A DNA stretch of 64,000 nucleotides, taken from assembly GCA_964057225.1 (NCBI GenBank), contig OZ059899.1, positions 8,370,001 to 8,434,000 on the forward strand, written 5' to 3'. This DNA is from Auanema rhodensis (taxonomy: Eukaryota > Animalia > Nematoda). This document shows positions 1,028 to 64,000 of the stretch, in pieces (position 1 is the first letter of the stretch; every line of letters begins with the position of its first letter). Under the pieces are notes generated by a model. The model was not told where the DNA came from. It ran no database searches and was given only the letters and a program-made list of their open reading frames with translations. A program made the position numbers and the translations under genes.

Positions 1028-3159
<2,132 letters not shown>

Positions 3160-5056: not shown

Positions 5057-5155
<99 letters not shown>

Positions 5156-5274
5156 CTTGAAAAGAATAATACCTGGAAAGTGAAAGGAATTGCTGATTGT
5201 CCACAATAAGAGGCTGATGTGTAAGTAATAACACAAGTAATTGCTAATATTATGAGAATCTTGCAGTTAGACAT
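3442..5274 (-). CDS. Hedgehog-related Warthog (Wart-domain) secreted protein without a Hint/Hog domain, with a Q/N/Y- and Pro-rich C-terminal half; closest recalled match is wrt-9
   Basis: Signal peptide [21 protein letters not shown]. Spliced exons then give [13 protein letters not shown]|[41 protein letters not shown]|YLRRSDQ...[22 protein letters not shown]...VRCCSYAPL...GQIFIGGEV...AFDYISNI, the typical Wart Cys pattern. The protein ends [28 protein letters not shown] (stop 3442-3444). Internal exon boundaries in 3600-4300 are less certain. Confidence 0.9.
5062..5151. repeat. (TA)n microsatellite, about 90 bp, in intron 1 of the wrt gene
   Basis: Perfect AT dinucleotide run; it explains the spurious YIYIYI ORFs in the track. 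Confidence 0.97.
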
Positions 5275-17100: not shown

Positions 17101-17321
17101 TAGTCATCTTTCTTTAACAGGAAATGTTTTCTTATGATTTTCATTTTGATATATTCGTCTCCTCTATGTTCTTTTCCATATATATATATTTTGAAATTCT
17201 GAATTTTTAAGTTTTTTTCATTGCTGTATGAAAATATAACAAATAAGAAAAATTACGTTGTGAAAATCTATCAAAAACACCGAGCAAAGTTAATGTACAT
17301 ATGTATTATGTGATACTGATT

Positions 17322-17375
<54 letters not shown>

Positions 17376-29600: not shown

Positions 29601-29848
29601 TTAATTCCACAAAAAATAATTCACATATTCACTATTGTTGAATTGATTCAGTTAATAATATTATTTGTTGTTGGATTCTATCCTGTACCTTATGTGGAAA
29701 TGGCTTTTCCAATAGTTATCGTCTCATTCATTCCCATACGGTAGTATTTCTTATAATTAATTTTACAATTTTATATAATTTTAGTTTATTCATATTACCA
29801 TTATTCTTCCGTCGTTCATATTTGGATGTTCTTGATGGTAAACACTAA
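26687..29848 (+). CDS. SLC4-family anion transporter, SLC4A11/BTR1-like (nematode abts-2/abts-3 type); about 20 short exons, 5' end possibly incomplete
   Basis: Exon translations include [136 protein letters not shown] and SYPPTHYIR, ending DVLDGKH*. These are SLC4A11-class motifs. Confidence 0.9.
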
Positions 29849-30083
29849 TGATTGTTGTGAAAGAACTATTTGAATCAATATTAATATTTTTAGTAGTTTA
29901 GTATTATTCTTAAATATGTTGCAGCCTTTAAAAATATATTTTCTATATTATTCGAGAATGAACTCGATTCATTATTCATAGTGATGGTTTAGATGATTAT
30001 TTGATATCAGATAACATTATTGTTTTAAAAAATGGACAAAACACGAAATATTCTGCTTGTAATTTATTTGCCAATAAACCATA

Positions 30084-33000: not shown

Positions 33001-33300
33001 AAACAAACCTGTGGTCCACAGATAAAATCACCCTGATCAAAAACAAGCTTAAAACCAGGACAACAATCATCTCGCGGATAGTCGCAAACGTTCAAATTAC
33101 AATTTCTAACAACTACGTCAGTTCCACTGAAAATGAAAACAATATTTTTTTGGAACCAGGTTTGCAACCTACTTGCATGAACATCCAGACTCTTCGGAAA
33201 CACATCTTCTTCTCAACGTCTGTTGAGCACACGAGCCACATGGAGAAGAACATTCTCCTTCAGCCAGCCATTCAGACCACAATCCGTTTTTAGGACAACA
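30084..33300 (-). other. C-terminal array of about 9 nematode-type thrombospondin type-1-like modules of the giant mucin
   Basis: Modules begin CCPKNGLWSEW, CCPPGGFWSLWGEW, ASWSEW, CCVMGGIWSEW, CCPKPGGYWSEW, CCAETGVWSEW, CCPTAGIWGEW, GLWNEWKDW and CPGKWTDW. Each is followed by a C...CGxC segment and then (T/K)RxC...GCxC.G, and most end in C....C.(Y/F)P...CC....CGP. Confidence 0.88.
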
Positions 33301-36300
33301 ATTGGGCCGTGATGAAGTCGTTGGAATTTCTGTAATCGAATTCGTGAACGAGTCAGTTGCTGTTGTAGATGGTGTAGTCGTTGATGTTGTCGTTGTCGTC
33401 GTAGATGGAGTCGTGCTCGTAGTTGTAGATGGAGTTGTCGTTGACGTCGTAGATGTTGTTGTAGATGGAGTCGTCGTTGATGTTGTAGATGTTGTTGTAG
33501 ATGGAGTCGTGCTCGTTGTTGTAGATGGTGTCGTCGTTGACGTCGTAGATGTTGTTGTAGATGGAGTCGTGCTCGTTGTTGTAGATGGTGTCGTCGTTGA
33601 CGTTGTAGATGTTGTTGTAGATGGAGTCGTCGTTGACGTTGTAGATGTCGTCGTAGATGGAGTCGTGCTCGTTGTTGTAGATGGAGTCGTGCTCGTTGTT
33701 GTAGATGGAGTCGTGCTCGTTGTTGTAGATGGTGTCGTCGTTGACGTTGTAGATGTTGTTGTAGATGGTGTCGTCGTTGACGTTGTAGATGTTGTCGTAG
33801 ATGGAGTCGTGCTCGTTGTTGTAGATGGAGTCGTCGTTGAAGTTGTAGATGTCGTCGTAGATGGAGTCGTGCTCGTTGTTGTAGATGGAGTCGTCGTTGA
33901 CGTTGTAGATGTTGTTGTGGATGGTGTCGTCGTTGACGTTGTAGATGTTGTTGTAGATGGAGTTGTGCTCGTTGTTGTAGATGGAGTCGTCGTTGACGTT
34001 GTAGATGTTGTCGTAGATGGAGTCGTGCTCGTTGTTGTAGATGGAGTCGTGCTCGTTGTTGTAGATGGAGTCGTCGTTGACGTTGTAGATGTTGTTGTGG
34101 ATGGTGTCGTCGTTGACGTTGTAGATGTTGTTGTAGATGGAGTTGTGCTCGTTGTTGTAGATGGAGTCGTCGTTGACGTTGTAGATGTTGTCGTAGATGG
34201 AGTCGTGCTCGTTGTTGTAGATGGAGTCGTGCTCGTTGTTGTAGATGGTGTCGTCGTTGACGTTGTAGATGTTGTCGTAGATGGAGTCGTGCTCGTTGTT
34301 GTAGATGGAGTCGTCGTTGACGTTGTAGATGTCGTCGTAGATGGAGTCGTGCTCGTTGTTGTAGATGGAGTCGTCGTTGACGTTGTAGACGTTGTTGTGG
34401 ATGGTGTCGTCGTTGACGTTGTAGATGTCGTCGTAGATGGAGTCGTGCTCGTTGTTGTAGATGGAGTCGTGCTCGTTGTTGTAGATGGAGTCGTGCTCGT
34501 TGTTGTAGATGGTGTCGTCGTTGACGTTGTAGATGTTGTTGTAGATGGTGTCGTCGTTGACGTTGTAGATGTTGTCGTAGATGGAGTCGTGCTCGTTGTT
34601 GTAGATGGAGTTGTCGTTGACGTTGTAGATGTTGTTGTGGATGGAGTCGTGCTCGTTGTTGTAGATGGTGTCGTCGTTGACGTCGTAGATGTTGTTGTAG
34701 ATGGAGTCGTGCTCGTTGTTGTAGATGGTGTCATCGTTGACGTTGTAGATGTTGTTGTAGATGGAGTCGTCGTTGACGTTGTAGATGTCGTCGTAGATGG
34801 AGTCGTGCTCGTTGTTGTAGATGGAGTCGTCGTTGACGTTGTAGATGTTGTTGTAGATGGAGTCGTCGTTGACGTTGTAGATGTCGTCGTAGATGGAGTC
34901 GTGCTCGTTGTTGTAGATGGAGTCGTGCTCGTTGTTGTAGATGGAGTCGTGCTCGTTGTTGTAGATGGTGTCGTCGTTGACGTTGTAGATGTTGTTGTAG
35001 ATGGTGTCGTCGTTGACGTTGTAGATGTTGTCGTAGATGGAGTCGTGCTCGTTGTTGTAGATGGAGTTGTCGTTGACGTTGTAGATGTTGTTGTGGATGG
35101 AGTCGTGCTCGTAGTTGTAGATGGAGTTGTCGTTGACGTCGTAGATGTTGTTGTAGATGGAGTCGTCGTAGATGTTGTTGTAGATGGAGTCGTCGTTGAT
35201 GTTGTAGATGTTGTTGTAGATGGAGTCGTGCTCGTTGTTGTAGATGGTGTCGTCGTTGACGTCGTAGATGTTGTTGTAGATGGAGTCGTGCTCGTTGTTG
35301 TAGATGGTGTCGTCGTTGACGTTGTAGATGTTGTTGTAGATGGAGTCGTCGTTGACGTTGTAGATGTCGTCGTAGATGGAGTCGTGCTCGTTGTTGTAGA
35401 TGGAGTCGTGCTCGTTGTTGTAGATGGAGTCGTGCTCGTTGTTGTAGATGGTGTCGTCGTTGACGTTGTAGATGTTGTTGTAGATGGTGTCGTCGTTGAC
35501 GTTGTAGATGTTGTCGTAGATGGAGTCGTGCTCGTTGTTGTAGATGGAGTTGTCGTTGACGTTGTAGATGTTGTTGTAGATGTTGTTGTGGATGGAGTCG
35601 TGCTCGTTGTTGTAGATGGAGTCGTGCTCGTTGTTGTAGATGGTGTCGTCGTTGACGTTGTAGATGTTGTTGTAGATGGTGTCGTCGTTGACGTTGTAGA
35701 TGTTGTTGTAGATGGAGTCGTCGTTGACGTTGTAGATGTTGTTGTAGATGGAGTTGACGTTGTAGATGTTGTTGTGGATGGTGTCGTCGTTGACGTTGTA
35801 GATGGTGTCGTCGTTGACGATGTAGATGTTGTTGTAGATGGTGTCGTCGTTGACGTTGTAGATGTTGTCGTAGATGGAGTCGTGCTCGTTGTTGTAGATG
35901 GAGTCGTCGTTGACGTTGTAGATGTTGTTGTGGATGGTGTCGTCGTTGACGTTGTAGATGTTGTTGTAGATGGAGTCGTGCTCGTTGTTGTAGATGGTGT
36001 CGTCGTTGACGTTGTAGATGTTGTTGTAGATGGAGTCGTCGTTGACGTTGTAGATGTTGTTGTAGATGGAGTCGTCGTTGACGTTGTAGATGTCGTCGTA
36101 GATGAAGTCGTGCTCGTTGTTGTAGATGGAGTCGTGCTCGTTGTTGTAGATGGAGTCGTGCTCGTTGTTGTAGATGGTGTCGTCGTTGACGTTGTAGATG
36201 TTGTTGTAGATGGTGTCGTCGTTGACGTTGTAGATGTTGTCGTAGATGGAGTCGTGCTCGTTGTTGTAGATGGAGTTGTCGTTGACGTTGTAGATGTTGT

Positions 36301-39300
36301 TGTGGATGGTGTCGTCGTTGACGTTGTAGATGTTGTTGTAGATGGAGTTGTGCTCGTTGTTGTAGATGGAGTCGTCGTTGACGTTGTAGATGTCGTCGTA
36401 GATGGAGTCGTGCTCGTTGTTGTAGATGGAGTCGTGCTCGTTGTTGTAGATGGTGTCGTCGTTGACGTTGTAGATGTTGTTGTAGATGGAGTCGTCGTTG
36501 ACGTTGTAGATGTTGTTGTAGATGGTGTCGTCGTTGACGTTGTAGATGTTGTTGTAGATGGAGTCGTGCTAGTTGTTGTAGATGGAGTCGTGCTCGTTGT
36601 TGTAGATGGAGTCGTCGTTGACGTTGTAGATGTTGTTGTGGATGGTGTCGTCGTTGACGTTGTAGATGTTGTTGTAGATGGAGTCGTCGTTGACGTTGTA
36701 GATGTCGTCGTAGATGGAGTCGTGCTCGTTGTTGTAGATGGAGTCGTGCTCGTTGTTGTAGATGGAGTCGTGCTCGTTGTTGTAGATGGTGTCGTCGTTG
36801 ACGTTGTAGATGTTGTTGTAGATGGTGTCGTCGTTGACGTTGTAGATGTTGTCGTAGATGGAGTCGTGCTCGTTGTTGTAGATGGAGTTGTCGTTGACGT
36901 TGTAGATGTTGTTGTGGATGGAGTCGTGCTCGTTGTTGTAGATGGTGTCGTCGTTGACGTTGTAGATGTTGTTGTAGATGGAGTCGTCGTTGACGTTGTA
37001 GATGTCGTCGTAGATGGAGTCGTGCTCGTTGTTGTAGATGGAGTCGTCGTTGACGTTGTAGATGTTGTTGTAGATGGAGTCGTCGTTGACGTTGTAGATG
37101 TCGTCGTAGATGGAGTCGTGCTCGTTGTTGTAGATGGAGTCGTGCTCGTTGTTGTAGATGGAGTCGTGCTCGTTGTTGTAGATGGTGTCGTCGTTGACGT
37201 TGTAGATGTTGTTGTAGATGGAGTCGTCGTTGACGTTGTAGATGTTGTTGTAGATGGTGTCGTCGTTGACGTTGTAGATGTTGTTGTAGATGGAGTCGTC
37301 GTTGACGTTGTAGATGTTGTTGTAGATGGAGTTGACGTTGTAGATGTTGTTGTGGATGGTGTCGTCGTTGACGTTGTAGATGGTGTCGTCGTTGACGATG
37401 TAGATGTTGTTGTAGATGGTGTCGTCGTTGACGTTGTAGATGTTGTCGTAGATGGAGTCGTGCTCGTTGTTGTAGATGGAGTCGTCGTTGACGTTGTAGA
37501 TGTTGTTGTGGATGGTGTCGTCGTTGACGTTGTAGATGTTGTTGTAGATGGAGTTGTGCTCGTTGTTGTAGATGGAGTCGTCGTTGACGTTGTAGATGTC
37601 GTCGTAGATGGAGTCGTGCTCGTTGTTGTAGATGGAGTCGTGCTCGTTGTTGTAGATGGAGTCGTCGTTGACGTTGTAGATGTTGTTGTAGATGGTGTCG
37701 TCGTTGACGTTGTAGATGTTGTTGTAGATGGAGTCGTCGTTGACGTTGTAGATGTTGTTGTAGATGGAGTCGTGCTCGTTGTTGTAGATGGTGTCGTCGT
37801 TGACGTTGTAGATGTTGTTGTAGATGGAGTCGTCGTTGACGTTGTAGATGTTGTTGTAGATGGAGTCGTGCTCGTTGTTGTTGATGGAGTCGTCGTTAAC
37901 GTTGTAGACGTTGTTGTGGATGGTGTCGTCGTTGACGTTGTAGATGTTGTTGTTGATGGAGTCGTGCTCGTTGTTGTAGATGGAGTCGTGCTCGTTGTTG
38001 TAGATGGAGTCGTGCTCGTTGTTGTAGATGGTGTCGTCGTTGACGTTGTAGATGTTGTTGTAGATGTTGTCGTAGATGGAGTCGTGCTCGTTGTTGTTGA
38101 TGGAGTCGTCGTTGACGATGTAGACGTTGTTGTAGATGGTGTCGTCGTTGACGTTGTAGATGTTGTCGTAGATGGAGTCGTGCTCGTTGTTGTAGATGGA
38201 GTCGTCGTTGACGTTGTAGATGTTGTTGTAGATGGAGTCGTGCTCGTTGTTGTAGATGGTGTCGTCGTTGACGTTGTAGATGTTGTTGTAGATGGTGTCG
38301 TCGTTGACGTTGTAGATGTTGTTGTTGATGGAGTCGTCGTTAACGTTGTAGACGTTGTTGTGGATGGTGTCGTCGTTGACGTTGTAGATGTTGTTGTTGA
38401 TGGAGTCGTGCTCGTTGTTGTAGATGGAGTCGTGCTCGTTGTTGTAGATGGAGTCGTGCTCGTTGTTGTAGATGGTGTCGTCGTTGACGTTGTAGATGTT
38501 GTTGTAGATGTTGTCGTAGATGGAGTCGTGCTCGTTGTTGTTGATGGAGTCGTCGTTGACGTTGTAGACGTTGTTGTAGATGGTGTCGTCGTTGACGTTG
38601 TAGATGTCGTCGTAGATGGAGTTGTGCTCGTTGTTGTAGATGGGGCCGTCGTTGACGTTGTAGATGTCGTCGTAGATGGAGTCGTGCTCGTTGTTGTAGA
38701 TGGAGTCGTGCTCGTTGTTGTAGATGGAGTCGTGCTCGTTGTTGTAGATCTAGTCGTGCTAGTTGTTGTAGATGGAGTCGTGCTCGTTGTTGTAGATGGT
38801 GTCGTCGTTGACGTTGTAGATGTTGTTGTGGATGGTGTCGTCGTTGACGTTGTAGATGTTGTTGTAGATGGAGTTGTGCTCGTTGTTGTAGATGGAGTCG
38901 TCGTTGACGTTGTAGATGTCGTCGTAGATGGAGTCGTGCTCGTTGTTGTAGATGGAGTCGTGCTCGTTGTTGTAGATGGAGTCGTGCTAGTTGTTGTAGA
39001 TGGAGTCGTGCTCGTTGTTGTAGATGGAGTCGTCGTTGACGTTGTAGATGTTGTTGTGGATGGTGTCGTCGTTGACGTTGTAGATGTTGTTGTAGATGGA
39101 GTTGTGCTCGTTGTTGTAGATGGAGTCGTCGTTGACGTTGTAGATGTCGTCGTAGATGGAGTCGTGCTCGTTGTTGTAGATGGAGTCGTGCTCGTTGTTG
39201 TAGATGGTGTCGTCGTTGACGTTGTAGATGTTGTTGTAGATGGAGTCGTCGTTGACGTTGTAGATGTTGTTGTAGATGGTGTCGTCGTTGACGTTGTAGA

Positions 39301-42300
39301 TGTCGTCGTAGATGGAGTCGTGCTCGTTGTTGTAGATGGAGTCGTCGTTGACGTTGTAGATGTTGTTGTGGATGGTGTCGTCGTTGACGTTGTAGATGTT
39401 GTTGTAGATGGAGTCGTGCTAGTTGTTGTAGATGGAGTCGTGCTCGTTGTTGTAGATGGTGTCGTCGTTGACGTTGTAGATGTTGTTGTGGATGGTGTCG
39501 TCGTTGACGTTGTAGATGTTGTTGTAGATGGTGTCGTCGTTGACGTTGTAGATGTCGTCGTAGATGGAGTCGTGCTCGTTGTTGTAGATGGAGTCGTCGT
39601 TGACGTTGTAGATGTTGTTGTGGATGGTGTCGTCGTTGACGTTGTAGATGTCGTCGTAGATGGAGTCGTGCTAGTTGTTGTAGATGGAGTCGTGCTCGTT
39701 GTTGTAGATGGTGTCGTCGTTGACGTTGTAGATGTTGTCGTAGATGGAGTCGTGCTCGTTGTTGTAGATGGTGTCGTCGTTGACGTTGTAGATGTTGTTG
39801 TAGATGGAGTTGTGCTCGTTGTTGTAGATGGAGTCGTCGTTGACGTTGTAGATGTCGTCGTAGATGGAGTCGTGCTCGTTGTTGTTGATGGTGTCATTGT
39901 TGACGTTGTAGATGTTGTTGTAGATGGAGTTGTGCTCGTTGTTGTAGATGGAGTCGTGCTCGTTGTTGTAGATGGTGTCGTCGTTGACGTTGTAGATGTT
40001 GTTGTGGATGATGTCGTCGTTGACGTTGTAGATGTTGTTGTAGATGGTGTCGTCGTTGACGTTGTAGATGTCGTCGTAGATGGAGTCGTGCTCGTTGTTG
40101 TAGATGGAGTCGTCGTTGACGTTGTAGATGTTGTTGTGGATGGTGTCGTCGTTGACGTTGTAGATGTTGTTGTAGATGGAGTCGTGCTAGTTGTTGTAGA
40201 TGGAGTCGTGCTCGTTGTTGTAGATGGTGTCGTCGTTGACGTTGTAGATGTTGTCGTAGATGGAGTCGTGCTCGTTGTTGTAGATGGTGTCGTCGTTGAC
40301 GTTGTAGATGTTGTTGTAGATGGAGTTGTGCTCGTTGTTGTAGATGGAGTCGTCGTTGACGTTGTAGATGTCGTCGTAGATGGAGTCGTGCTCGTTGTTG
40401 TTGATGGTGTCATTGTTGACGTTGTAGATGTTGTTGTAGATGGAGTTGTGCTCGTTGTTGTAGATGGAGTCGTCGTTGACGTTGTAGATGTTGTCGTAGA
40501 TGGAGTCGTGCTCGTTGTTGTAGATGGAGTCGTGCTCGTTGTTGTAGATGGTGTCGTCGTTGACGTTGTAGATGTTGTTGTAGATGGTGTCGTCGTTGAC
40601 GTTGTAGATGTTGTCGAAGATGGAGTCGTGCTCGTTGTTGTAGATGGAGTTGTCGTTGACGTTGTAGATGTCGTCGTAGATGGAGTCGTGCTCGTTGTTG
40701 TAGATGGAGTCGTCATTGACGTTGTAGATATTATTGTGGATGGTGTCGTCGTTGACGTTGTAGATGTTGTTTTAGATGGAGTCGTGCTCGTTGTTGTTGA
40801 TGGAGTCGTCGTTGACGTTGTAGACGTTGTTGTGGATGGTGTCGTCGTTGACGTTGTAGATGTCGTCGTAGATGGAGTCGTGCTCGTTGTTGTAGATGGA
40901 GTCGTGCTAGTTGTTGTAGATGAAGTCGTGCTCGTTGTTGTAGATGGAGTCGTCGTTGACGTTGTAGATGTCGTCGTAGAAGGAGTCGTGCTCGTTGTCG
41001 TAGATGGAGTCGTGCTCGTTGTTGTAGATGGAGTCGTCGTTGACGTTGTAGATGTTGTTGTGGATGATGTCGTCGTTGACGTTGTAGATGTTGTTGTAGA
41101 TGGAGTTGTGCTCGTTGTTGTAGATGGAGTCGTCATTGACGTTGTAGATGTTGTCGTAGATGGAGTTGTGCTCGTTGTTGTAGATGGTGTCGTCGTTGAC
41201 GTTGTAGATGTTGTTGTAGATGTTGTCGTAGATGGAGTCGTGCTCGTTGTTGTAGATGGAGTCGTCGTTGACGTTGTAGACGTTGTTGTGGATGGTGTCG
41301 TCGTTGACGTTGTAGATGTCGTCGTAGATGGAGTCGTGCTCGTTGTTGTAGATGGAGTCGTGCTAGTTGTTGTAGATGGAGTCGTGCTCGTTGTTGTAGA
41401 TGGTGTCGTCGTTGACGTTGTAGATGTTGTTGTGGATGGTGTCGTCGTTGACGTTGTAGATGTCGTCGTAGATGGAGTCGTGCTCGTTGTTGTAGATGGA
41501 ATCGTCGTTGATGTTGTTGATGTTGTTGTAGATGGAGTCGTCGTTGACGTTGTAGATGTTGTTGTAGATGGTGTCGTCGTTGACGTTGTAGATGTTGTCG
41601 TAGATGGAGTCGTGCTCGTTGTTGTAGATGGAGTCGTGCTAGTTGTTGTAGATGGAGTCGTGCTAGTTGTTGTAGATGGAGTCGTGCTCGTTGACGTTGT
41701 AGATGCTGTCGTAGATGGAGTCGTGCTCGTTGTTGTAGATGGAGTCGTCGTTGACGTTGTAGATGTTGTTGTGGATGGTGTCGTCGTTGACGTTGTAGAT
41801 GTTGTTGTAGATGGAGTTGTGCTCGTTGTTGTAGATGGAGTCGTCGTTGACGTTGTAGATGTCGTCGTAGATGGAGTCGTGCTCGTTGTCGTAGATGGAG
41901 TCGTCGTTGACGTTGTAGATGTTGTTGTGGATGGTGTCGTCGTTGACGTTGTAGATGTTGTTGTAGATGGAGTCGTGCTAGTTGTTGTAGATGAAGTCGT
42001 GCTCGTTGTTGTAGATGGAGTTGTGCTCGTTGTTGTAGATGGAGTCGTCGTTGACGTTGTAGATGTCGTCGTAGATGGAGTCGTGCTCGTTGTCGTAGAT
42101 GGAGTCGTCAATGACGTTGTAGATGTTGTCGTAGATGGAGTTGTGCTCGTTGTTGTAGATGGTGTCGTCGTTGACGTTGTAGATGTTGTTGTAGATGTTG
42201 TCGTAGATGGAGTCGTGCTCGTTGTTGTAGATGGAGTCGTCGTTGACGTTGTAGACGTTGTTGTGGATGGTGTCGTCGTTGACGTTGTAGATGTCGTCGT

Positions 42301-45300
42301 AGATGGAGTCGTGCTCGTTGTTGTAGATGGAGTCGTGCTAGTTGTTGTAGATGGAGTCGTGCTCGTTGTTGTAGATGGTGTCGTCGTTGACGTTGTAGAT
42401 GTTGTTGTGGATGGTGTCGTCGTTGACGTTGTAGATGTCGTCGTAGATGGAGTCGTGCTCGTTGTTGTAGATGGAGTCGTCGTTGATGTTGTTGATGTTG
42501 TTGTAGATGGAGTCGTCGTTGACGTTGTAGATGTTGTTGTAGATGGTGTCGTCGTTGACGTTGTAGATGTTGTCGTAGATGGAGTCGTGCTCGTTGTTGT
42601 AGATGGAGTCGTGCTAGTTGTTGTAGATGGAGTCGTGCTAGTTGTTGTAGATGGAGTCGTGCTCGTTGACGTTGTAGATGCTGTCGTAGATGGAGTCGTG
42701 CTCGTTGTTGTAGATGGAGTCGTCGTTGACGTTGTAGATGTTGTTGTAGATGGAGTTGTGCTCGTTGTTGTAGATGGAGTCGTCGTTGACGTTGTAGATG
42801 TCGTCGTAGATGGAGTCGTGCTCGTTGTCGTAGATGGAGTCGTCGTTGACGTTGTAGATGTTGTTGTGGATGGTGTCGTCGTTGACGTTGTAGATGTTGT
42901 TGTAGATGGAGTTGTGCTCGTTGTTGTAGATGGAGTCGTCGTTGACGTTGTAGATGTCGTCGTAGATGGAGTCGTGCTCGTTGTTGTAGATGGTGTCGTG
43001 CTAGTTGTTGTAGATGTTGTTGTAGATTTTGTCGTAGATGGAGTCGTGCTTGTTGTTGTTGATGGAGTCGTCGTTGACGTTGTAGATGTTGTTGTGGATG
43101 GTGTCGTCGTTGACGTTGTAGATGTTGTTGTAGATGGAGTTGTGCTCGTTGTTGTAGATGGAGTCGTCGTTGACGTTGTAGATGTCGTCGTAGATGGAGT
43201 CGTGCTCGTTGTTGTAGATGGTGTCGTCGTTGACGTTGTAGATGTTGTTGTAGATTTTGTCGTAGATGGAGTCGTGCTTGTTGTTGTTGATGGAGTCGTC
43301 GTTGACGTTGTAGACGTTGTTGTGGATGGTGTCGTCGTTGACGTTGTAGATGTCGTCGTAGATGGAGTCGTGCTCGTTGTTGTAGATGGAGTCGTGCTAG
43401 TTGTTGTAGATGGAGTCGTGCTCGTTGTTGTAGATGGTGTCGTCGTTGACGTCGTAGATGTTGTTGTAGATGGTGTCGTCGTTGACGTTGTAGATGTTGT
43501 TGTAGATGGTGTCGTCGTTGACGTTGTAGATGTTGTTGTAGATGGTGTCGTCGTTGACGTTGTAGATGTTGTCGTAGATGGAGTCGTGCTCGTTGTTGTA
43601 GATGGAGTCGTGCTAGTTGTTGTAGATGGAGTCGTGCTCGTTGTTGTAGATGGTGTCGTCGTTGACGTTGTAGATGTTGTCGTAGATGGAGTCGTGCTCG
43701 TTGTTGTAGATGGAGTAGTCGTTGACGTTGTAGATGTTGTTGTGGATGGTGTCGTCGTTGACGTTGTAGATGTTGTTGTTGATGGAGTCGTGCTCGTTGT
43801 TGTAGATGGTGTCGTCGTTGACGTTGTAGACGTTGTTGTGGATGGTGTCGTCGTTGACGTTGTAGATGTCGTCGTAGATGGAGTCGTGCTCGTTGTTGTA
43901 GATGGAGTCGTGCTAGTTGTTGTAGATGGAGTCGTGCTCGTTGTTGTAGATGGAGTCGTCGTTGACGTTGTAGATGTTGTTGTAGATGGAGTTGTGCTCG
44001 TTGTTGTAGATGGAGTCGTCGTTGACGTTGTAGATGTCGTCGTAGATGGAGTCGTGCTCGTTGTCGTAAATGGAGTCGTCGTTGACGTTGTAGATGTTGT
44101 TGTGGATGGTGTCGTCGTTGACGTTGTAGATGTTGTTGTAGATGGAGTTGTGCTCGTTGTTGTAGATGGAGTCGTCGTTGACGTTGTAGATGTCGTCGTA
44201 GATGGAGTCGTGCTCGTTGTTGTAGATGGTGTCGTCGTTGACGTTGTAGATGTTGTTGTAGATGTTGTCGTAGATGGAGTCGTGCTCGTTGTTGTTGATG
44301 GAGTCGTCGTTGACGTTGTAGACGTTGTTGTGGATGGTGTCGTCGTTGACGTTGTAGATGTCGTCGTAGATGGAGTCGTGCTCGTTGTTGTAGATGGAGT
44401 CGTCGTTGACGTTGTAGATGTTGTTGTGGATGGTGTCGTCGTTGACGTTGTAGATGTTGTTGTTGATGGAGTCGTGCTCGTTGTTGTAGATGGTGTCGTC
44501 GTTGACGTTGTAGACGTTGTTGTGGATGGTGTCGTCGTTGACGTTGTAGATGTCGTCGTAGATGGAGTCGTGCTCGTTGTTGTAGATGGAGTCGTGCTAG
44601 TTGTTGTAGATGGAGTCGTGCTCGTTGTTGTAGATGGAGTCGTCGTTGACGTTGTAGATGTTGTTGTAGATGGAGTTGTGCTCGTTGTTGTAGATGGAGT
44701 CGTCGTTGACGTTGTAGATGTCGTCGTAGATGGAGTCGTGCTCGTTGTCGTAGATGGAGTCGTCGTTGACGTTGTAGATGTTGTTGTGGATGGTGTCGTC
44801 GTTGACGTTGTAGATGTTGTTGTAGATGGAGTTGTGCTCGTTGTTGTAGATGGAGTCGTCGTTGACGTTGTAGATGTCGTCGTAGATGGAGTCGTGCTCG
44901 TTGTTGTAGATGGTGTCGTCGTTGACGTTGTAGATGTTGTTGTAGATGTTATCGTAGATGGAGTCGTGCTCGTTGTTGTTGATGGAGTCGTCGTTGACGT
45001 TGTAGACGTTGTTGTGGATGGTGTCGTCGTTGACGTTGTAGATGTCGTCGTAGATGGAGTCGTGCTCGTTGTTGTAGATGGAGTCGTCGTTGACGTTGTA
45101 GATGTTGTTGTGGATGGTGTCGTCGTTGACGTTGTAGATGTTGTTGTAGATGGAGTTGTGCTCGTTGTTGTAGATCGAGTCGTCGTTGACGTTGTAGATG
45201 TCGTCGTAGATGGTGTCGTGCTCGTTGTTGTAGATGGTGTCGTCGTTGACGTTGTAGATGTTGTTGTAGATGTTGTCGTAGATGGAGTCGTGCTCGTTGT

Positions 45301-54300: not shown

Positions 54301-57300
54301 CGTGCTCGTTGTTGTAGATGGAGTTGTCGTTGACGTTGTAGATGTCGTTGTGGATGGCGTCGTCGTTGACGTTGTAGATGTTGTTGTAGATGCAGTTGTG
54401 CTCGTTGTTGTAGATGGTGTCGTCGTTGACGTTGTAGATGTCGTCGTAGATGGAGTTGTGCTCGTTGTTGTAGATGGAGTTGTCGTTGACGTTGTAGATG
54501 TTGTTGTGGATGGTGTCGTCGTTGACGTTGTAGATGTTGTTGTAGATGGAGTCGTGCTCGTTGTTGTAGATGGAGTTGTGCTCGTTGTTGTAGATGGTGT
54601 CGTCGTTGACGTTGTAGATGTTGTTGTGGATGGTGTCGTCGTTGACGTTGTAGATGTTGTTGTAGATGGAGTCGTCGTTGACGTTGTAGATGTTGTTGTG
54701 GATGGTGTCGTCGTTGACGTTGTTGATGTCGTCGTAGATGGAGTCGTGCTCGTTGTTGTGGATGGTGTCGTCGTTGACGTTGTAGATGTTGTTGTAGATG
54801 GAGTTGTGCTCGTTGTTGTAGATGGAGTCGTCGTTGACGTTGTAGATGTCGTCGTAGATGGAGTCGTGCTCGTTGTTGTAGATGGAGTCGTCGTTGACGT
54901 TGTAGATGTTGTTGTAGATGGAGTCGTGCTCGTTGTTGTAGATGGAGTCGTCGTTGACGTTGTAGATGTCGTCGTAGATGGAGTCGTGCTCGTTGTTGTA
55001 GATGGAGTCGTCGTTGACGTTGTAGATGTTGTTGTAGATGGAGTCGTGCTCGTTGTTGTAGATGGTGTCGTCGTTGACGTTGTAGATGTTGTTGTAGATG
55101 GTGTCGTCGTTGACGTTGTAGATGTCGTCGTAGATGGAGTCGTGCTCGTTGTTGTAGATGGAGTCGTCGTTGACGTTGTAGATGTTGTTGTGGATGGTGT
55201 CGTCGTTGACGTTGTTGATGTCGTCGTAGATGGAGTCGTGCTCGTTGTTGTGGATGGTGTCGTCGTTGACGTTGTAGATGTTGTTGTAGATGGAGTTGTG
55301 CTCGTTGTTGTAGATGGAGTCGTCGTTGACGTTGTAGATGTCGTCGTAGATGGAGTCGTGCTCGTTGTTGTAGATGGAGTCGTCGTTGACGTTGTAGATG
55401 TTGTTGTAGATGGAGTCGTGCTCGTTGTTGTAGATGGTGTCGTCGTTGACGTTGTAGATGTTGTTGTAGATGGTGTCGTCGTTGACGTTGTAGATGTCGT
55501 CGTAGATGGAGTCGTGCTCGTTGTTGTAGATGGAGTCGTCGTTGACGTTGTAGATGTTGTTGTGGATGGAGTCGTGCTCGTTGTTGTAGATGGAGTCGTC
55601 GTTGACGTTGTAGATGTTGTTGTAGATGGAGTTGTGCTCGTTGTTGTAGATGGAGTTGTCGTTGACGTTGTAGATGTCGTTGTGGATGGCGTCGTGCTCG
55701 TTGTTGTAGATGGAGTCGTCGTTGACGTTGTAGATGTTGTTGTGGATGGAGTCGTGCTCGTTGTTGTAGATGGAGTCGTCGTTGACGTTGTAGATGTTGT
55801 TGTAGATGGAGTCGTGCTCGTTGTTGTAGATGGAGTTGTCGTTGACGTTGTAGATGTCGTTGTGGATGGCGTCGTCGTTGACGTTGTAGATGTTGTTGTA
55901 GATGCAGTTGTGCTCGTTGTTGTAGATGGTGTCGTCGTTGACGTTGTAGATGTCGTCGTAGATGGAGTTGTGCTCGTTGTTGTAGATGGAGTTGTCGTTG
56001 ACGTTGTAGATGTTGTTGTGGATGGTGTCGTCGTTGACGTTGTAGATGTTGTTGTAGATGGAGTCGTGCTCGTTGTTGTAGATGGAGTTGTGCTCGTTGT
56101 TGTAGATGGTGTCGTCGTTGACGTTGTAGATGTTGTTGTGGATGGTGTCGTCGTTGACGTTGTAGATGTTGTTGTAGATGGAGTCGTCGTTGACGTTGTA
56201 GATGTTGTTGTGGATGGTGTCGTCGTTGACGTTGTTGATGTCGTCGTAGATGGAGTCGTGCTCGTTGTTGTGGATGGTGTCGTCGTTGACGTTGTAGATG
56301 TTGTTGTAGATGGAGTTGTGCTCGTTGTTGTAGATGGAGTCGTCGTTGACGTTGTAGATGTCGTCGTAGATGGAGTCGTGCTCGTTGTTGTAGATGGAGT
56401 CGTCGTTGACGTTGTAGATGTTGTTGTAGATGGAGTCGTGCTCGTTGTTGTAGATGGTGTCGTCGTTGACGTTGTAGATGTTGTTGTAGATGGTGTCGTC
56501 GTTGACGTTGTAGATGTCGTCGTAGATGGAGTCGTGCTCGTTGTTGTAGATGGAGTCGTCGTTGACGTTGTAGATGTTGTTGTGGATGGAGTCGTGCTCG
56601 TTGTTGTAGATGGAGTCGTCGTTGACGTTGTAGATGTTGTTGTAGATGGAGTTGTGCTCGTTGTTGTAGATGGAGTTGTCGTTGACGTTGTAGATGTCGT
56701 TGTGGATGGCGTCGTGCTCGTTGTTGTAGATGGAGTCGTCGTTGACGTTGTAGATGTTGTTGTGGATGGAGTCGTGCTCGTTGTTGTAGATGGAGTCGTC
56801 GTTGACGTTGTAGATGTTGTTGTAGATGGAGTCGTGCTCGTTGTTGTAGATGGAGTTGTCGTTGACGTTGTAGATGTCGTTGTGGATGGCGTCGTCGTTG
56901 ACGTTGTAGATGTTGTTGTAGATGCAGTTGTGCTCGTTGTTGTAGATGGAGTCGTCGTTGACGTTGTAGATGTCGTCGTAGATGGAGTTGTGCTCGTTGT
57001 TGTAGATGGAGTCGTCGTTGACGTTGTAGATGTTGTTGTAGATGGAGTTGTGCTCGTTGTTGTAGATGGAGTTGTCGTTGACGTTGTAGATGTCGTTGTG
57101 GATGGCGTCGTGCTCGATGTTGTAGATGGAGTCGTCGTTGACGTTGTAGATGTTGTTGTGGATGGAGTCGTGCTCGTTGTTGTAGATGGAGTCGTCGTTG
57201 ACGTTGTAGATGTTGTTGTAGATGGAGTCGTGCTCGTTGTTGTAGATGGAGTTGTCGTTGACGTTGTAGATGTCGTTGTGGATGGCGTCGTCGTTGACGT

Positions 57301-60300
57301 TGTAGATGTTGTTGTAGATGCAGTTGTGCTCGTTGTTGTAGATGGAGTCGTCGTTGACGTTGTAGATGTCGTCGTAGATGGAGTTGTGCTCGTTGTTGTA
57401 GATGGAGTCGTCGTTGACGTTGTAGATGTTGTTGTAGATGGAGTTGTGCTCGTTGTTGTAGATGGAGTTGTCGTTGACGTTGTAGATGTCGTTGTGGATG
57501 GCGTCGTGCTCGATGTTGTAGATGGAGTCGTCGTTGACGTTGTAGATGTCGTTGTGGATGGCGTCGTCGTTGACGTTGTAGATGTTGTTGTAGATGCAGT
57601 TGTGCTCGTTGTTGTAGATGGAGTCGTCGTTGACGTTGTAGATGTTGTTGTGGATGGAGTCGTGCTCGTTGTTGTAGATGGAGTCGTCGTTGACGTTGTA
57701 GATGTTGTTGTAGATGGAGTTGTGTTCGTTGTTGTAGATGGAGTCGTCGTTGACGTTGTAGATGTTGTTGTGGATGGAGTCGTGCTCGTTGTTGTAGATG
57801 GAGTCGTCGTTGACGTTGTAGATGTTGTTGTAGATGGAGTCGTGCTCGTTGTTGTAGATGGAGTCGTCGTTGACGTTGTAGATGTTGTTGTAGATGGAGT
57901 TGTGCTCGTTGTTGTAGATGGAGTCGTCGTTGACGTTGTAGATGTCGTCGTAGATGGAGTCGTGCTCGTTGTTGTAGATGGAGTCGTCGTTGACGTTGTA
58001 GATGTTGTTGTGGATGGAGTCGTGCTCGTTGTTGTAGATGGAGTCGTCGTTGACGTTGTAGATGTTGTTGTAGATGGAGTCGTGCTCGTTGTTGTAGATG
58101 GAGTTGTCGATGACGTTGTAGATGTCGTTGTGGATGGCGTCGTCGTTGACGTTGTAGATGTTGTTGTAGATGCAGTTGTGCTCGTTGTTGTAGATGGAGT
58201 CGTCGTTGACGTTGTAGATGTCGTCGTAGATGGAGTTGTGCTCGTTGTTGTAGATGGAGTCGTCGTTGACGTTGTAGATGTTGTTGTAGATGGAGTCGTG
58301 CTCGTTGTAGTAGATGGTGTCGTCGTTGACGTTGTAGATGTCGTCGTAGATGGAGTCGTGCTCGTTGTTGTAGATGGAGTTGTGCTCGTTGTTGTAGATG
58401 GAGTCGTCGTTGACGTTGTAGATGTTGTTGTAGATGTTGTCGTAGATGGAGTCGTGCTCGTTGTTGTTGATGGAGTCGTGCTAGTTGTTGTAGATGGTGT
58501 CGTCGTTGACGTTGTAGATGTTGTTGTAGATGGAGTCGTCGTTGACGTTGTAGATGTTGTTGTGGATGGTGTCGTCGTTGACGTTGTAGATGTTGTTGTA
58601 GATGGAGTCGTCGTTGACGTTGAAGATGTTGTCGTAGATGGAGTCGTGCTCGTTGTCGTTGATGGAGTCGTCGTTGACGTTGTAGATGTTGTTGTGGATG
58701 GTGTCGTCGTTGACGTTGTTGATGTCGTCGTAGATGGAGTCGTGCTCGTTGTTGTAGATGGAGTCGTGCTCGTTGTTGTAGATGGAGTTGTCGTTGACGT
58801 TGTAGATGTTGTTGTGGATGGTGTCGTCGTTGACGTTGTAGATGTTGTTGTAGATGGAGTCGTGCTCGTTGTTGTAGATGGAGTTGTGCTCGTTGTTGTA
58901 GATGGTGTCGTCGTTGACGTTGTAGATGTTGTTGTGGATGGTGTCGTCGTTGACGTTGTAGATGTTGTTGTAGATGGAGTCGTCGTTGACGTTGTAGATG
59001 TTGTCGTAGATGGAGTCGTGCTCGTTGTCGTTGATGGAGTCGTCGTTGACGTTGTAGATGTTGTTGTGGATGGTGTCGTCGTTGACGTTGTTGATGTCGT
59101 CGTAGATGGAGTCGTGCTCGTTGTTGTAGATGGAGTCGTCGTTGATGTTGTTGATGTTGTTGTAGATGGAGTCGTCGTTGACGTTGTAGATGTCGTCGTA
59201 GATGGAGTCGTGCTCGTTGTTGTAGATGGAGTCGTGCTCGTTGTTGTAGATGGAGTCGTGCTCGTTGTTGTAGATGGAGTTGTCGTTGACGTTGTAGATG
59301 TTGTTGTGGATGGTGTCGTCGTTGACGTTGTAGATGTTGTTGTAGATGAAGTCGTGCTCGTTGTTGTAGATGGAGTTGTGCTCGTTGTTGTAGATGGAGT
59401 CGTCGTTGACGTTGTAGATGTCGTCGTAGATGGAGTCGTGCTCGTTGTTGTAGATGGAGTCGTGCTCGTTGTTGTAGATGGAGTTGTCGTTGACGTTGTA
59501 GATGTCGTTGTGGATGGCGTCGTCGTTGACGTTGTAGATGTTGTTGTAGATGCAGTTGTGCTCGTTGTTGTAGATGGAGTCGTCGTTGACGTTGTAGATG
59601 TCGTCGTAGATGGAGTTGTGCTCGTTGTTGTAGATGGAGTCGTCGTTGACGTTGTAGATGTTGTTGTAGATGGAGTCGTGCTCGTTGTAGTAGATGGTGT
59701 CGTCGTTGACGTTGTAGATGTCGTCGTAGATGGAGTCGTGCTCGTTGTTGTAGATGGAGTTGTGCTCGTTGTTGTAGATGGAGTCGTCGTTGACGTTGTA
59801 GATGTTGTTGTAGATGTTGTCGTAGATGGAGTCGTGCTCGTTGTTGTAGATGGAGTCGTGCTAGTTGTTGTAGATGGTGTCGTCGTTGACGTTGTAGATG
59901 TTGTTGTAGATGGAGTCGTCGTTGACGTTGTAGATGTTGTTGTGGATGGTGTCGTCGTTGACGTTGTAGATGTTGTTGTAGATGGAGTCGTCGTTGACGT
60001 TGAAGATGTTGTCGTAGATGGAGTCGTGCTCGTTGTCGTTGATGGAGTCGTCGTTGACGTTGTAGATGTTGTTGTGGATGGTGTCGTCGTTGACGTTGTT
60101 GATGTCGTCGTAGATGGAGTCGTGCTCGTTGTTGTAGATGGAGTTGTGCTCGTTGTTGTGGATGGTGTCGTAGTTGACGTTGTAGATGTCGTCGTAGATG
60201 GAGTCGTGCTCGTTGTTGTAGATGGAGTCGTGCTCGTTGTTGTAGATGGAGTTGTCGTTGACGTTGTAGATGTTGTTGTGGATGGTGTCGTCGTTGACGT

Positions 60301-63300
60301 TGTAGATGTTGTTGTAGATGGAGTCGTGCTCGTTGTTGTAGATGGAGTTGTGCTCGTTGTCGTAGATGGAGTCGTGCTCGTTGTTGTGGATGGTGTCGTC
60401 GTTGACGTTGTAGATGTTGTTGTAGATGGAGTCGTCGTTGACGTTGTAGATGTTGTCGTAGATGGAGTCGTGCTCGTTGTCGTTGATGGAGTCGTCGTTG
60501 ACGTTGTAGATGTTGTTGTAGATGGAGTCGTGCTCGTTGTCGTAGATGGAGTCGTGCTCGTTGTCGTAGATGGAGTCGTGCTCGTTGTTGTGGATGGTGT
60601 CGTCGTTGACGTTGTAGATGTTGTTGTAGATGGAGTCGTCGTTGACGTTGTAGATGTTGTCGTAGATGGAGTCGTGCTCGTTGTCGTTGATGGAGTCGTC
60701 GTTGACGTTGTAGATGTTGTTGTGGATGGTGTCGTCGTTGACGTTGTTGATGTCGTCGTAGATGGAGTCGTGCTCGTTGTTGTAGATGGAGTCGTCGTTG
60801 ATGTTGTTGATGTTGTTGTAGATGGTGTCGTCGTTGACGTTGTTGATGTCGTCGTAGATGGAGTCGTGCTCGTTGTTGTAGATGGAGTCGTCGTTGACGT
60901 TGTAGATGTTGTTGTGGATGGTGTCGTCGTTGACGTTGTTGATGTCGTCGTAGATGGAGTCGTGCTCGTTGTCGTTGATGGAGTCGTCGTTGACGTTGTA
61001 GATGTTGTTGTGGATGGTGTCGTCGTTGACGTTGTTGATGTCGTCGTAGATGGAGTCGTGCTCGTTGTTGTAGATGGAGTCGTCGTTGACGTTGTAGATG
61101 TCGTCGTAGATGGAGTCGTGCTCGTTGTTGTAGATGGAGTCGTGCTCGTTGTTGTAGATGGAGTTGTCGTTGACGTTGTAGATGTTGTTGTGGATTGTGT
61201 CGTCGTTGACGTTGTAGATGTTGTTGTAGATGGAGTCGTCGTTGACGTTGTAGATGTTGTCGTAGATGGAGTCGTGCTCGTTGTCGTTGATGGAGTCGTC
61301 GTTGACGTTGTAGATGTTGTTGTGGATGGTGTCGTCGTTGACGTTGTTGATGTCGTCGTAGATGGAGTCGTGCTCGTTGTTGTAGATGGAGTTGTCGTTG
61401 ACGTTGTAGATGTTGTTGTGGATGGTGTCGTCGTTGACGTTGTAGATGTTGTTGTAGATGGAGTCGTGCTCGTTGTTGTAGATGGTGTCGTCGTTGACGT
61501 TGTAGATGTTGTTGTGGATGGTGTCGTCGTTGACGTTGTAGATGTTGTTGTAGATGGAGTCGTCGTTGACGTTGTAGATGTTGTTGTGGATGGTGTCGTC
61601 GTTGACGTTGTTGATGTCGTCGTAGATGGAGTCGTGCTCGTTGTTGTGGATGGTGTCGTCGTTGACGTTGTAGATGTTGTTGTAGATGGAGTTGTGCTCG
61701 TTGTTGTAGATGGAGTCGTCGTTGACGTTGTAGATGTCGTCGTAGATGGAGTCGTGCTCGTTGTTGTAGATGGAGTCGTCGTTGACGTTGTAGATGTTGT
61801 TGTAGATGGAGTCGTGCTCGTTGTTATAGATGGTGTCGTCGTTGACGTTGTAGATGTTGTTGTAGATGGTGTCGTCGTTGACGTTGTAGATGTCGTCGTA
61901 GATGGAGTCGTGCTCGTTGTTGTAGATGGAGTCGTCGTTGACGTTGTAGATGTTGTTGTGGATGGAGTCGTGCTCGTTGTTGTAGATGGAGTCGTCGTTG
62001 ACGTTGTAGATGTTGTTGTAGATGGAGTTGTGCTCGTTGTTGTAGATGGAGTTGTCGTTGACGTTGTAGATGTCGTTGTGGATGGCGTCGTGCTCGTTGT
62101 TGTAGATGGAGTCGTCGTTGACGTTGTAGATGTTGTTGTGGATGGAGTCGTGCTCGTTGTTGTAGATGGAGTCGTCGTTGACGTTGTAGATGTTGTTGTA
62201 GATGGAGTCGTGCTCGTTGTTGTAGATGGAGTCGTGCTCGTTGTTGTAGATGGAGTCGTCGTTGACGTTGTAGATGTTGTTGTAGATGGAGTTGTGCTCG
62301 TTGTTGTAGATGGAGTCGTCGTTGACGTTGTAGATGTCGTCGTAGATGGAGTCGTGCTCGTTGTTGTAGATGGAGTCGTCGTTGACGTTGTAGATGTTGT
62401 TGTGGATGGAGTCGTGCTCGTTGTTGTAGATGGAGTCGTCGTTGACGTTGTAGATGTTGTTGTAGATGGAGTCGTGCTCGTTGTTGTAGATGGAGTTGTC
62501 GTTGACGTTGTAGATGTCGTTGTGGATGGCGTCGTCGTTGACGTTGTAGATGTTGTTGTAGATGCAGTTGTGCTCGTTGTTGTAGATGGAGTCGTCGTTG
62601 ACGTTGTAGATGTCGTCGTAGATGGAGTTGTGCTCGTTGTTGTAGATGGAGTCGTCGTTGACGTTGTAGATGTTGTTGTAGATGGAGTTGTGCTCGTTGT
62701 TGTAGATGGAGTTGTCGTTGACGTTGTAGATGTCGTTGTGGATGGCGTCGTGCTCGTTGTTGTAGATGGAGTCGTCGTTGACGTTGTAGATGTTGTTGTG
62801 GATGGAGTCGTGCTCGTTGTTGTAGATGGAGTCGTCGTTGACGTTGTAGATGTTGTTGTAGATGGAGTCGTGCTCGTTGTTGTAGATGGAGTCGTCGTTG
62901 ACGTTGTAGATGTTGTTGTAGATGGAGTTGTGGTCGTTGTTGTAGATGGAGTCGTCGTTGACGTTGTAGATGTCGTCGTAGATGGAGTCGTGCTCGTTGT
63001 TGTAGATGGAGTCGTCGTTGACGTTGTAGATGTTGTTGTGGATGGAGTCGTGCTCGTTGTTGTAGATGGAGTCGTCGTTGACGTTGTAGATGTTGTTGTA
63101 GATGGAGTCGTGCTCGTTGTTGTAGATGGAGTTGTCGTTGACGTTGTAGATGTCGTTGTGGATGGCGTCGTCGTTGACGTTGTAGATGTTGTTGTAGATG
63201 CAGTTGTGCTCGTTGTTGTAGATGGAGTCGTCGTTGACGTTGTAGATGTCGTCGTAGATGGAGTTGTGCTCGTTGTTGTAGATGGAGTCGTCGTTGACGT

Positions 63301-64000
63301 TGTAGATGTTGTTGTAGATGGAGTCGTGCTCGTTGTAGTAGATGGTGTCGTCGTTGACGTTGTAGATGTCGTCGTAGATGGAGTCGTGCTCGTTGTTGTA
63401 GATGGAGTTGTGCTAGTTGTTGTAGATGGTGTCGTCGTTGACGTTGTAGATGTTGTTGTAGATGTTGTCGTAGATGGAGTCGTGCTCGTTGTTGTAGATG
63501 GAGTCGTGCTAGTTGTTGTAGATGGTGTCGTCGTTGACGTTGTAGATGTTGTTGTAGATGGAGTCGTCGTTGACGTTATAGATGTTGTTGTGGATGGTGT
63601 CGTCGTTGACGTTGTAGATGTTGTTGTAGATGGAGTCGTCGTTGACGTTGAAGATGTTGTCGTAGATGGAGTCGTGCTCGTTGTCGTTGATGGAGTCGTC
63701 GTTGACGTTGTAGATGTTGTTGTGGATGGTGTCGTCGTTGACGTTGTTGATGTCGTCGTAGATGGAGTCGTGCTCGTTGTTGTAGATGGAGTTGTGCTCG
63801 TTGTTGTAGATGGAGTCGTCGTTGACGTTGTAGATGTCGTCGTAGATGGAGTCGTGCTCGTTGTTGTAGATGGAGTCGTGCTCGTTGTTGTAGATGGAGT
63901 TGTCGTTGACGTTGTAGATGTTGTTGTGGATGGTGTCGTCGTTGACGTTGTAGATGTTGTTGTAGATGGAGTCGTGCTCGTTGTTGTAGATGGAGTTGTG
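30084..64000 (-). CDS. Giant secreted mucin-like protein (5' end outside the window): more than 10,000-aa Thr/Ser/Pro repeat domain followed by about 9 TSP1-like Cys-rich modules
   Basis: The minus-strand frame ending at 33169 stays in register to base 64000: every 60-nt line begins on a Thr/Ser/Pro codon, and I found no in-frame stop. A donor at 33172 and a 46-nt intron lead to exon 33126. Many short exons follow, encoding WxxW/CxxTCGxC/RxRxC modules, with the stop at 30084-30086 after ...KIVSGKIVCV. Confidence 0.9.
33361..64000 (-). repeat. Coding tandem-repeat array (over 30.6 kb) of 24-bp (TTPSTTTS) and 36-bp (TTSTTTPSTTTS) units with higher-order repeats
   Basis: Plus-strand motifs gttgttgtagatggagtcgtgctc (24 bp) and gttgttgtagatggwgtcgtcgttgacgttgtagat (36 bp) are interleaved up to the window edge. 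Confidence 0.98.

Follow-up and report, generated by a model that had tools for sequence, protein, structure and literature searches.

A probable secreted giant mucin of the nematode Auanema rhodensis with a predicted 99.6 kb coding exon of Pro/Thr/Ser repeats

Repeat exons of more than 30 kb are already known from human MUC12 and from Chironomus: MUC12 alleles are predicted to encode up to 23,080 aa from one exon with a variable number of tandem repeats (VNTR), MUC4 VNTR alleles reach 27.8 kb (2026 pangenome preprint, PMC13345508), and the Chironomus Balbiani-ring genes (BR1, BR2.1, BR2.2, BR6), about 40 kb long with only four introns, encode giant secreted proteins with a repetitive core (PMC4192438). 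Here we describe a locus on contig OZ059899.1 (below, C7) of the nematode Auanema rhodensis (assembly GCA_964057225.1), where a stretch of 64,000 nucleotides (C7:8370001–8434000, “the window”) ends inside a long array of Pro/Thr/Ser (PTS) codons. Judged from the sequence, a giant secreted mucin is probably encoded here by a real nematode gene with a single PTS exon of 99.6 kb. The kind of feature is already known, being a mucin repeat (VNTR) exon, and this one is an extreme member whose size stands out. An earlier reading of the window (the original prediction) had measured that size against vertebrate exons of 17–22 kb; the size does stand out, but the benchmark is outdated, because MUC12 (PMC13345508) and the Balbiani-ring genes (PMC4192438) both exceed 30 kb.

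The minus-strand frame, obtained by translating the reverse complement of the window from position 63999 down, is stop-free until 33171–33169 and gives 10,276 codons within the window, with T at 64.6%, S at 25.1%, and P at 9.6%. The open reading frame (ORF) track holds only one long ORF here, 33169–42111 on the minus strand with a TTG start, because the tool requires a start codon and omits frames leaving the source. The lower bound claimed by the original prediction, 30,828 nt (33173–64000), is right, as are its coordinates and its codon-phase argument, and the true extent is larger: 99,643 nt when the neighboring contig sequence is included. Repeat matches in a genome search reach ~C7:8.5026 Mb, and 90 kb more of the same contig was added, with the window numbering continued past 64,000. 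The GC content of 0.47 and the plus-strand GC skew of +0.55 are flat from ~33.4 kb to the window end, where Tandem Repeats Finder reports one array (periods 36/60/96 nt), and the composition is unchanged up to ~132.6 kb in continued coordinates. The whole frame is open for 33,228 codons (T 21,452, S 8,344, P 3,268, the other residues together 0.5%), and a genome profile search independently gives an open frame of 33,228 aa at the same place. Over the whole array, stops interrupt the remaining minus-strand frames 66 and 31 times.

33173–64000, minus strand: part of the giant PTS exon inside the window; 30,828 nt, stop-free, 99.5% T/S/P in the whole frame
C7:8403173–8502815 (window 33173–132815, continued), minus strand: the whole giant exon; 99,643 nt, 33,213 whole codons plus two split codons

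Both ends of the array carry splice sites (a slash marks the exon–intron junctions). The 5′ boundary reads ...ATTTGCGACG/gtaaaac, then an intron of ~44 nt, then attttag/TACAAGGTCAAGTTCCAACTACA, with the acceptor ttttag/TA at 132816/132815; the upstream exon gives one codon base and the giant exon the other two, and the frame is kept. The 3′ boundary reads ...TCATGCAA/gtaggttgc...ttttcag/TGGAACT, with the donor AA/gtaggt at 33173/33172, and the frame is again kept into the next exon. Between this one acceptor and one donor we found no stop, no frameshift, and no intron signal: donor-like (GTAAG/GTGAG/GTAAA/GTATG) and acceptor-like (TTTYAG) motifs are absent from the whole array, and the minimum GC over all of its 60-nt windows is 0.37, so that an AT-rich island is absent too, as had been claimed. 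Hidden introns were considered and rejected, since neither splice-like motifs nor AT islands occur. By these signals the array appears to be one uninterrupted coding exon of ~99.6 kb with canonical nematode splice sites in matching phases. The one-coding-exon interpretation of the original prediction is thus supported by every point that sequence can test (stops, frameshifts, splice ends, codon constraint), the exon being about three times longer than claimed.

The variation among the repeat units speaks more directly to coding. Differences from the unit consensus number 45, 83, and 3161 at codon positions 1, 2, and 3, that is, 96% are at the third position. Sorted by copy number, single variants fall 8/10/6 on positions 1/2/3, those in 6–50 copies 2/2/13, and those above 50 copies 0/0/10, the last being all synonymous. 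The association of rarity with position (rare vs. common, non-third vs. third) has a Fisher p = 6e-6, and 23 of the 27 common variants are at the third position (binomial p = 4e-8), the counts being of copies and not of independent events. New mutations are expected to be spread over all three codon positions, as the single-copy variants are; the copy-number spectrum therefore implies that peptide-altering changes fail to spread through the array. When the commonest nucleotide variant of the 12-residue unit is compared with that of a paralogue on another contig, C6 (described below), 7 of the 12 codons differ, all synonymously, including Ser TCT versus AGC. Finally, we estimate from the 2,008 TCA codons that more than 100 stops would be expected if positions 1 and 2 varied like the third (~10%), and none is present. 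Taken at the level of the sequence, the third-position bias, the synonymous common variants, and the codon differences from the paralogue argue for selection on the protein.

Splitting the array at each Pro yields 3,263 units: 1,537 of PSTTTSTT (24 nt), 1,521 of PSTTTSTTSTTT (36 nt), and a remainder of minor variants, ~94% of the units being exact copies of the two peptides. A long domain of tandem repeats in which Pro, Thr, and Ser predominate is characteristic of mucins, and the array has this form. Residues other than T/S/P occur as 105 singletons and one pair, and such isolated occurrences mean that the array contains no frameshifted segment; the lack of any frameshift over 99.6 kb in turn indicates a high base-level quality. 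There are no N bases. The longest stretch repeated exactly measures 6,158 nt, with a lag of 6,132 nt, and this pair (6.1 kb × 2) is the only near-identical large duplication; 48% of the 300-mers of the array are unique and 52% are recurrent, up to 15 times. The array ends are much more unique and diverged, the center more homogenised, which looks like what unequal exchange would produce in a natural array. An array-typical 59-mer has 171 copies in the 181-Mb assembly, and 171/171 lie within this array, so no unplaced contig or haplotig carries copies, and stray or haplotig copies of the array were rejected on this basis. The largest ambiguity, the 6.1-kb block, is within long-read span. Most likely the array expanded by unequal exchange, probably of sister chromatids or homologues, both between the 24/36-nt units and between multi-kb higher-order blocks, with selection purging variants that alter the peptide or break the frame; the duplicated multi-kb blocks imply that recent expansion steps were large.

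Downstream of the repeats, the array frame continues unbroken into ...ATDSFTNSITEIPTTSSRPN and then, in the same exon, into a TSP1-like module, from which the gene can be followed to its stop codon.

33175–33300, minus strand: first TSP1-like half-module (CC..G.WSEW...C...CG.C....R.R.C....GC.C), continuing the repeat frame at the giant exon's 3′ end
33127–33172, minus strand: 46-nt intron gtaggt...ttttcag, containing the TAG that the ORF track took as the frame end
33009–33126, minus strand: next exon, with the end of the first TSP1 domain and a 4-Cys “C..CCPGF....CGP” module (B1)
30087–32968, minus strand: remaining tail exons, with about eight more TSP1-like modules, each intron-split and followed by a B module, ending ...GKIVCV
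30063–30086, minus strand: stop TAA (30084–30086) and AATAAA (30063–30068), read from the sequence

The first half-module has a weak Pfam TSP1_CFP_C match and is 63% identical to residues 16–70 of the Cooperia orthologue KAK6055772.1. Splicing AA/T over the 46-nt intron restores the frame (...GCSC-N-GTDVVVRNC...), and the position of this intron coincides with a module boundary in the same orthologue. The further modules, separated by introns of roughly 45–90 nt, were taken from a three-frame ORF map and a manual module map, automatic strict-donor splice paths having missed the GTTTG donors. At the other end of the tail, KAK6055772.1, A0A0N5C1A9 (from Strongyloides papillosus), and a third orthologue all stop at the corresponding ...F(V/I)C(A/S).

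Each tail module has an A part and a B part. The A part has the consensus CC..G.W.EW...C...CG.CG...R.R.C...GC.C with 12 invariant columns in an alignment of seven modules; W8, W11, C17, C21, G22, C24, R31, C33, G39, C40, and C42 are invariant, giving the W-x-x-W, Arg, and Cys pattern of TSP1, in a variant with CG-x-CG in place of the usual CS-x-TCG-x-G. The B part completes the TSP1 domain after the intron and adds the 4-Cys C..CC.G(F/Y)...CGP, with an invariant G and five Cys among the eight B modules aligned. Membership of the family is seen in the exon at 30559–30717 (minus strand), which matches Pfam PF00090 (TSP_1) at 27.1 bits against a cut-off of 21.6; the other tail modules are weak or below the cut-off because an intron splits each domain. 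The spliced orthologues KAK6055772.1 and A0A0N5C1A9 score 58.3 and 64.5 bits for TSP_1, over profile positions 2–49 of 49.

Upstream of the array, two firm exons make up the head, which has six Cys in ~106 residues. Located ~870 nt before the giant exon is another exon, which opens with MKIWLGSLVILQVFITLALSQ and by inspection resembles a signal peptide. In the S. papillosus orthologue the N-terminus is a hydrophobic leader. Between the signal-peptide-like exon and the head we found a single open splice path, and it runs through a 7-nt micro-exon, AGAGACG, at 133289–133295 (minus strand, continued numbering). A shared homology of a “C6-like head” was considered and left as a pattern only, the head similarity being marginal or not significant.

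Relatives of the gene exist both in the same genome and in other nematodes. A profile search with the A module finds a second locus on C6 with at least seven modules and a third on C4 with three. The C6 paralogue (C6:4580439–4592276) has a Cys-patterned head and an 8.6-kb PTS frame of 2,880 codons (C6:4580439–4589078) directly upstream of its modules, made of the same PSTTTSTT and PSTTTSTTSTTT peptides in other codons; its first TSP1 module is in a separate exon and not fused to the array. The C4 locus (C4:16961971–16962824) carries its three modules in the same TSP1-like variant, and no PTS array was seen in the 20 kb upstream. In a profile search of a 1.84-billion-protein library there were 1,291 matches, and the whole-module matches are nematode proteins, named relatives including those from Cooperia oncophora (KAK6055772.1), Strongyloides papillosus (A0A0N5C1A9), Rhabditophanes, Steinernema, Caenorhabditis auriculariae, Pristionchus entomophagus, Auanema, Mesorhabditis, Ditylenchus, and Acrobeloides.

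KAK6055772.1, named “thrombospondin type 1 domain protein, partial” in its source, is collinear with the tail from the first module to the C-terminus: its residues 16–70, 538–598, and 771–808 are 63%, 64%, and 45% identical to the first, sixth, and last modules. The family can be recognized by this collinear tail of TSP1-variant and 4-Cys modules ending ...F/I-V-C-A/V. The Cooperia protein starts exactly where repeats would end, and 1.3 kb upstream, at the end of its 18.7-kb contig, there is a PTSTTTV repeat. Within that end (MU915094.1, positions 1–716), the outer part of the repeat reads as the inner part in reverse complement (VVVDVGT...), which gives the contig end a palindromic look; a collapsed mucin array probably produced this artefact during assembly. 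A0A0N5C1A9, a complete model, comprises a leader, Cys-rich head repeats, a mucin domain of ~330 residues (TTSEELTTI...), and nine tail modules. On the chromosome-scale Pristionchus entomophagus sequence BTSX01000001.1, a TTSTTEEPTTTVI array with an open frame of at least 9.2 kb stands directly before the “partial” tail gene GMS79559.1; the gene annotated over the array encodes 3,655 aa and extends beyond the examined locus, and from the sequence we believe that the array gene and the tail gene are probably one gene split by annotation.

A Thr-rich array thus lies directly upstream of the tail at five loci: the present one, the C6 paralogue, S. papillosus, the Cooperia contig, and the Pristionchus locus. 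On the sequences compared, TSP1-tailed mucins are an old, nematode-wide family, given that the Cooperia, S. papillosus, and Pristionchus relatives share the tail and the adjoining array, and the repeat peptide and array length turn over fast within it: the arrays of known relatives have ~0.3 to >3.6 thousand residues versus 33 thousand here. We found no functional study of the family in the literature.

The predicted protein would consist of a signal peptide, a six-Cys head of ~110 residues, a PTS domain of ~33,150 residues, and a tail of about nine divergent TSP1 repeats with 4-Cys modules, in total ~34,000 residues and ~3.3 MDa before glycosylation, the PTS domain alone accounting for ~3.2 MDa of peptide. 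From what is generally known of mucins and TSP1 proteins, it would be secreted co-translationally, and its ~29,800 Ser/Thr (~90% of the domain) would be densely O-glycosylated, giving a stiff, hydrated bottle-brush filament. At the ~0.25 nm per residue of glycosylated mucin domains, the PTS domain would be ~8 micrometers long when extended. The disulfide-rich head and the TSP1 tail would anchor or cross-link the protein to the extracellular matrix, to the surface coat, or to other molecules; WSEW motifs are the type of site modified by C-mannosyltransferases in TSP1 repeats. Either the surface coat or a luminal lining would be a likely location.

Several points weigh against this interpretation. 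The open frame by itself is weak evidence, because units that are multiples of three stay in frame under slippage or unequal exchange, and the other two frames of the C6 paralogue are also nearly stop-free. The variant counts, as said, are of copies. As for annotated or transcript-derived products that cross the 3′ junction, the 66 residues of non-repeat sequence at the C-terminal end of the giant exon had no word match among proteins of 550–1,750 aa or of 89–283 aa, a result that is uninformative about expression. At the 5′ end, the gene model is tentative because the link needs the 7-nt micro-exon: either the micro-exon is real or the model is wrong. Pfam, searched exon by exon, gave no match to either the head or the 4-Cys B module, and comparison of the head with those of A0A0N5C1A9 and the C6 paralogue gave E = 0.6, E = 5e-4 over 20 residues, and no alignment. 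Lastly, the copy number of the 6.1-kb block and the total length could be mis-assembled.

The last point leads to an alternative that we consider unlikely, in which the gene and its mucin exon are real and the true length differs greatly from the assembled one, the array having been expanded, collapsed, or mis-joined. Tandem regions are where assemblies fail most often, and this one has 24/36-nt units, recurrent 300-mers (52%, up to 15 times), and a 6,158-nt exact repeat at lag 6,132; yet its sole large near-identical duplication can be spanned by HiFi or Oxford Nanopore reads, distinguishing variants are frequent elsewhere, there are no N's, the array-typical 59-mer is on no other contig, and neither the natural pattern of diverged edges and homogenised center nor the zero frameshifts in 99.6 kb suggests an error. 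That the array is largely outside the mature mRNA or protein, through non-canonical or cryptic splicing, an early end of transcription, or because this is an unexpressed allele that hyper-expanded recently, with the 8.6-kb paralogue as the working copy, seems to us quite improbable. The smaller paralogue with identical peptide units does exist, the protein word searches across the 3′ junction were negative, and a transcript of >100 kb with a 34,000-residue product would be at the known cellular limit; titin, however, demonstrates that mRNAs of comparable size are workable. The splice sites and phases, moreover, are intact at both ends, as is the tail to its stop and AATAAA, no donor- or acceptor-like motifs occur inside the array, and a decaying or non-coding array would maintain neither exclusively synonymous common variants nor the absence of all of the >100 stops estimated from the 2,008 TCA codons under third-position-like variation.

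Gene models of other nematodes are often split at this point (the Cooperia, Pristionchus, and Mesorhabditis proteins are flagged partial), as they would be if a non-coding satellite lay between two small genes, one upstream for a secreted Cys-rich protein and one downstream for a TSP1-repeat protein. We regard this as very improbable: the array runs in frame and unbroken into the first TSP1 module of the same open frame, the S. papillosus annotation has head, mucin domain, and tail in a single protein, and a satellite would account neither for the codon-position signal nor for the synonymous divergence from the paralogue.

The other genes noted in the window are all on the plus strand. Exons of an SLC4-type bicarbonate/anion transporter at 28800–29750 (Pfam HCO3_cotransp, 50.9 bits for one 46-residue exon) converge on the 3′ end of the mucin gene. 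Voltage-gated K+ channel pore exons lie at 20579–21029 (Ion_trans just under the Pfam cut-off per exon), a gene of the nematode cuticle-collagen type with Gly-X-Y blocks between Cys clusters at 7701–8369 (Pfam Collagen, 85.8 bits), and carboxyltransferase-domain exons (Pfam Carboxyl_trans) of the propionyl-CoA/methylcrotonyl-CoA carboxylase beta-subunit type at 1000–3050. The collagen gene, introns of ~47 nt, and the nematode orthologues mark the contig as nematode and rule out a human origin. Long (TA)n or (TATG)-type microsatellites occupy 5050–5230, 14950–15100, and 17300–17400, and the AT-rich intergenic sequence has a GC of 0.25–0.28 versus 0.47 in the mucin exon.

We lean slightly towards the view that the locus is correctly assembled and fully expressed, in which case it would hold the longest coding exon on any record found (99.6 kb) and encode one of the longest predicted animal polypeptides, in the range of titin. 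A literature search, which was not exhaustive, found neither a longer coding exon nor a described nematode giant mucin. If reads and RNA bear it out, the size limit for a coding exon would be raised to ~100 kb, beyond the ~40-kb Chironomus genes and the ~69-kb equivalent of MUC12; a nematode cell would transcribe, export, and translate an mRNA of >100 kb of near-perfect 24/36-nt repeats, and selection would hold an 8/12-residue peptide constant over ~3,260 copies. The locus would then be a natural case in which to study the in-frame upkeep and homogenisation of huge repeats, the making and translation of a transcript with 65% Thr codons, and the role of a micrometer-scale glycoprotein in the matrix or surface coat of a worm. 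For annotation, the locus shows a systematic truncation of nematode TSP1-tailed mucins by ORF tracks and gene models, and since several orthologues in the databases are “partial” at the array, the mucin content of nematodes is probably under-annotated.

How, finally, does the gene compare with its counterparts? Like the vertebrate mucins (MUC12, MUC16, MUC4, MUC5AC/B), it has one giant in-frame Pro/Thr/Ser repeat exon flanked by small exons for globular domains, its product would be a secreted or surface protein, and its length would vary by gain and loss of units. Unlike them, it has no homology outside the low-complexity part, their flanks being VWD, CysD, SEA, and EGF domains, while here there are a 6-Cys head and TSP1-like modules; the repeat is also far simpler, with 8- and 12-residue units that are 94% identical at the peptide level. 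Relative to the ~69-kb equivalent for the longest MUC12 allele reported, the exon is ~1.4 times as large.

The Balbiani-ring genes are the invertebrate precedent for repeat exons of >30 kb and very long mRNAs, but they belong to another phylum, are ~2.5 times shorter, and their transcription has been seen directly, whereas that of the present gene is predicted. Their repeats, with silk-like Cys-containing constant and subrepeat regions, are not of the PTS mucin type. Among nematode proteins, the Toxocara canis TES-120 surface-coat mucins are small and secreted, with a Ser/Thr-rich O-glycosylated domain and small Cys-rich SXC/ShK modules; no ShK domains were found in the present gene, and the sizes differ by two orders of magnitude. 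The nearest counterparts are the nematode TSP1-tailed proteins (KAK6055772.1, A0A0N5C1A9, GMS79559.1), which have the same TSP1-variant tail of 6–9 modules with a Thr-rich array upstream; they differ in the repeat peptide, PTSTTTV, TTSEELTTI..., and TTSTTEEPTTTVI versus PSTTTSTT here, and several of the entries are truncated at the array.

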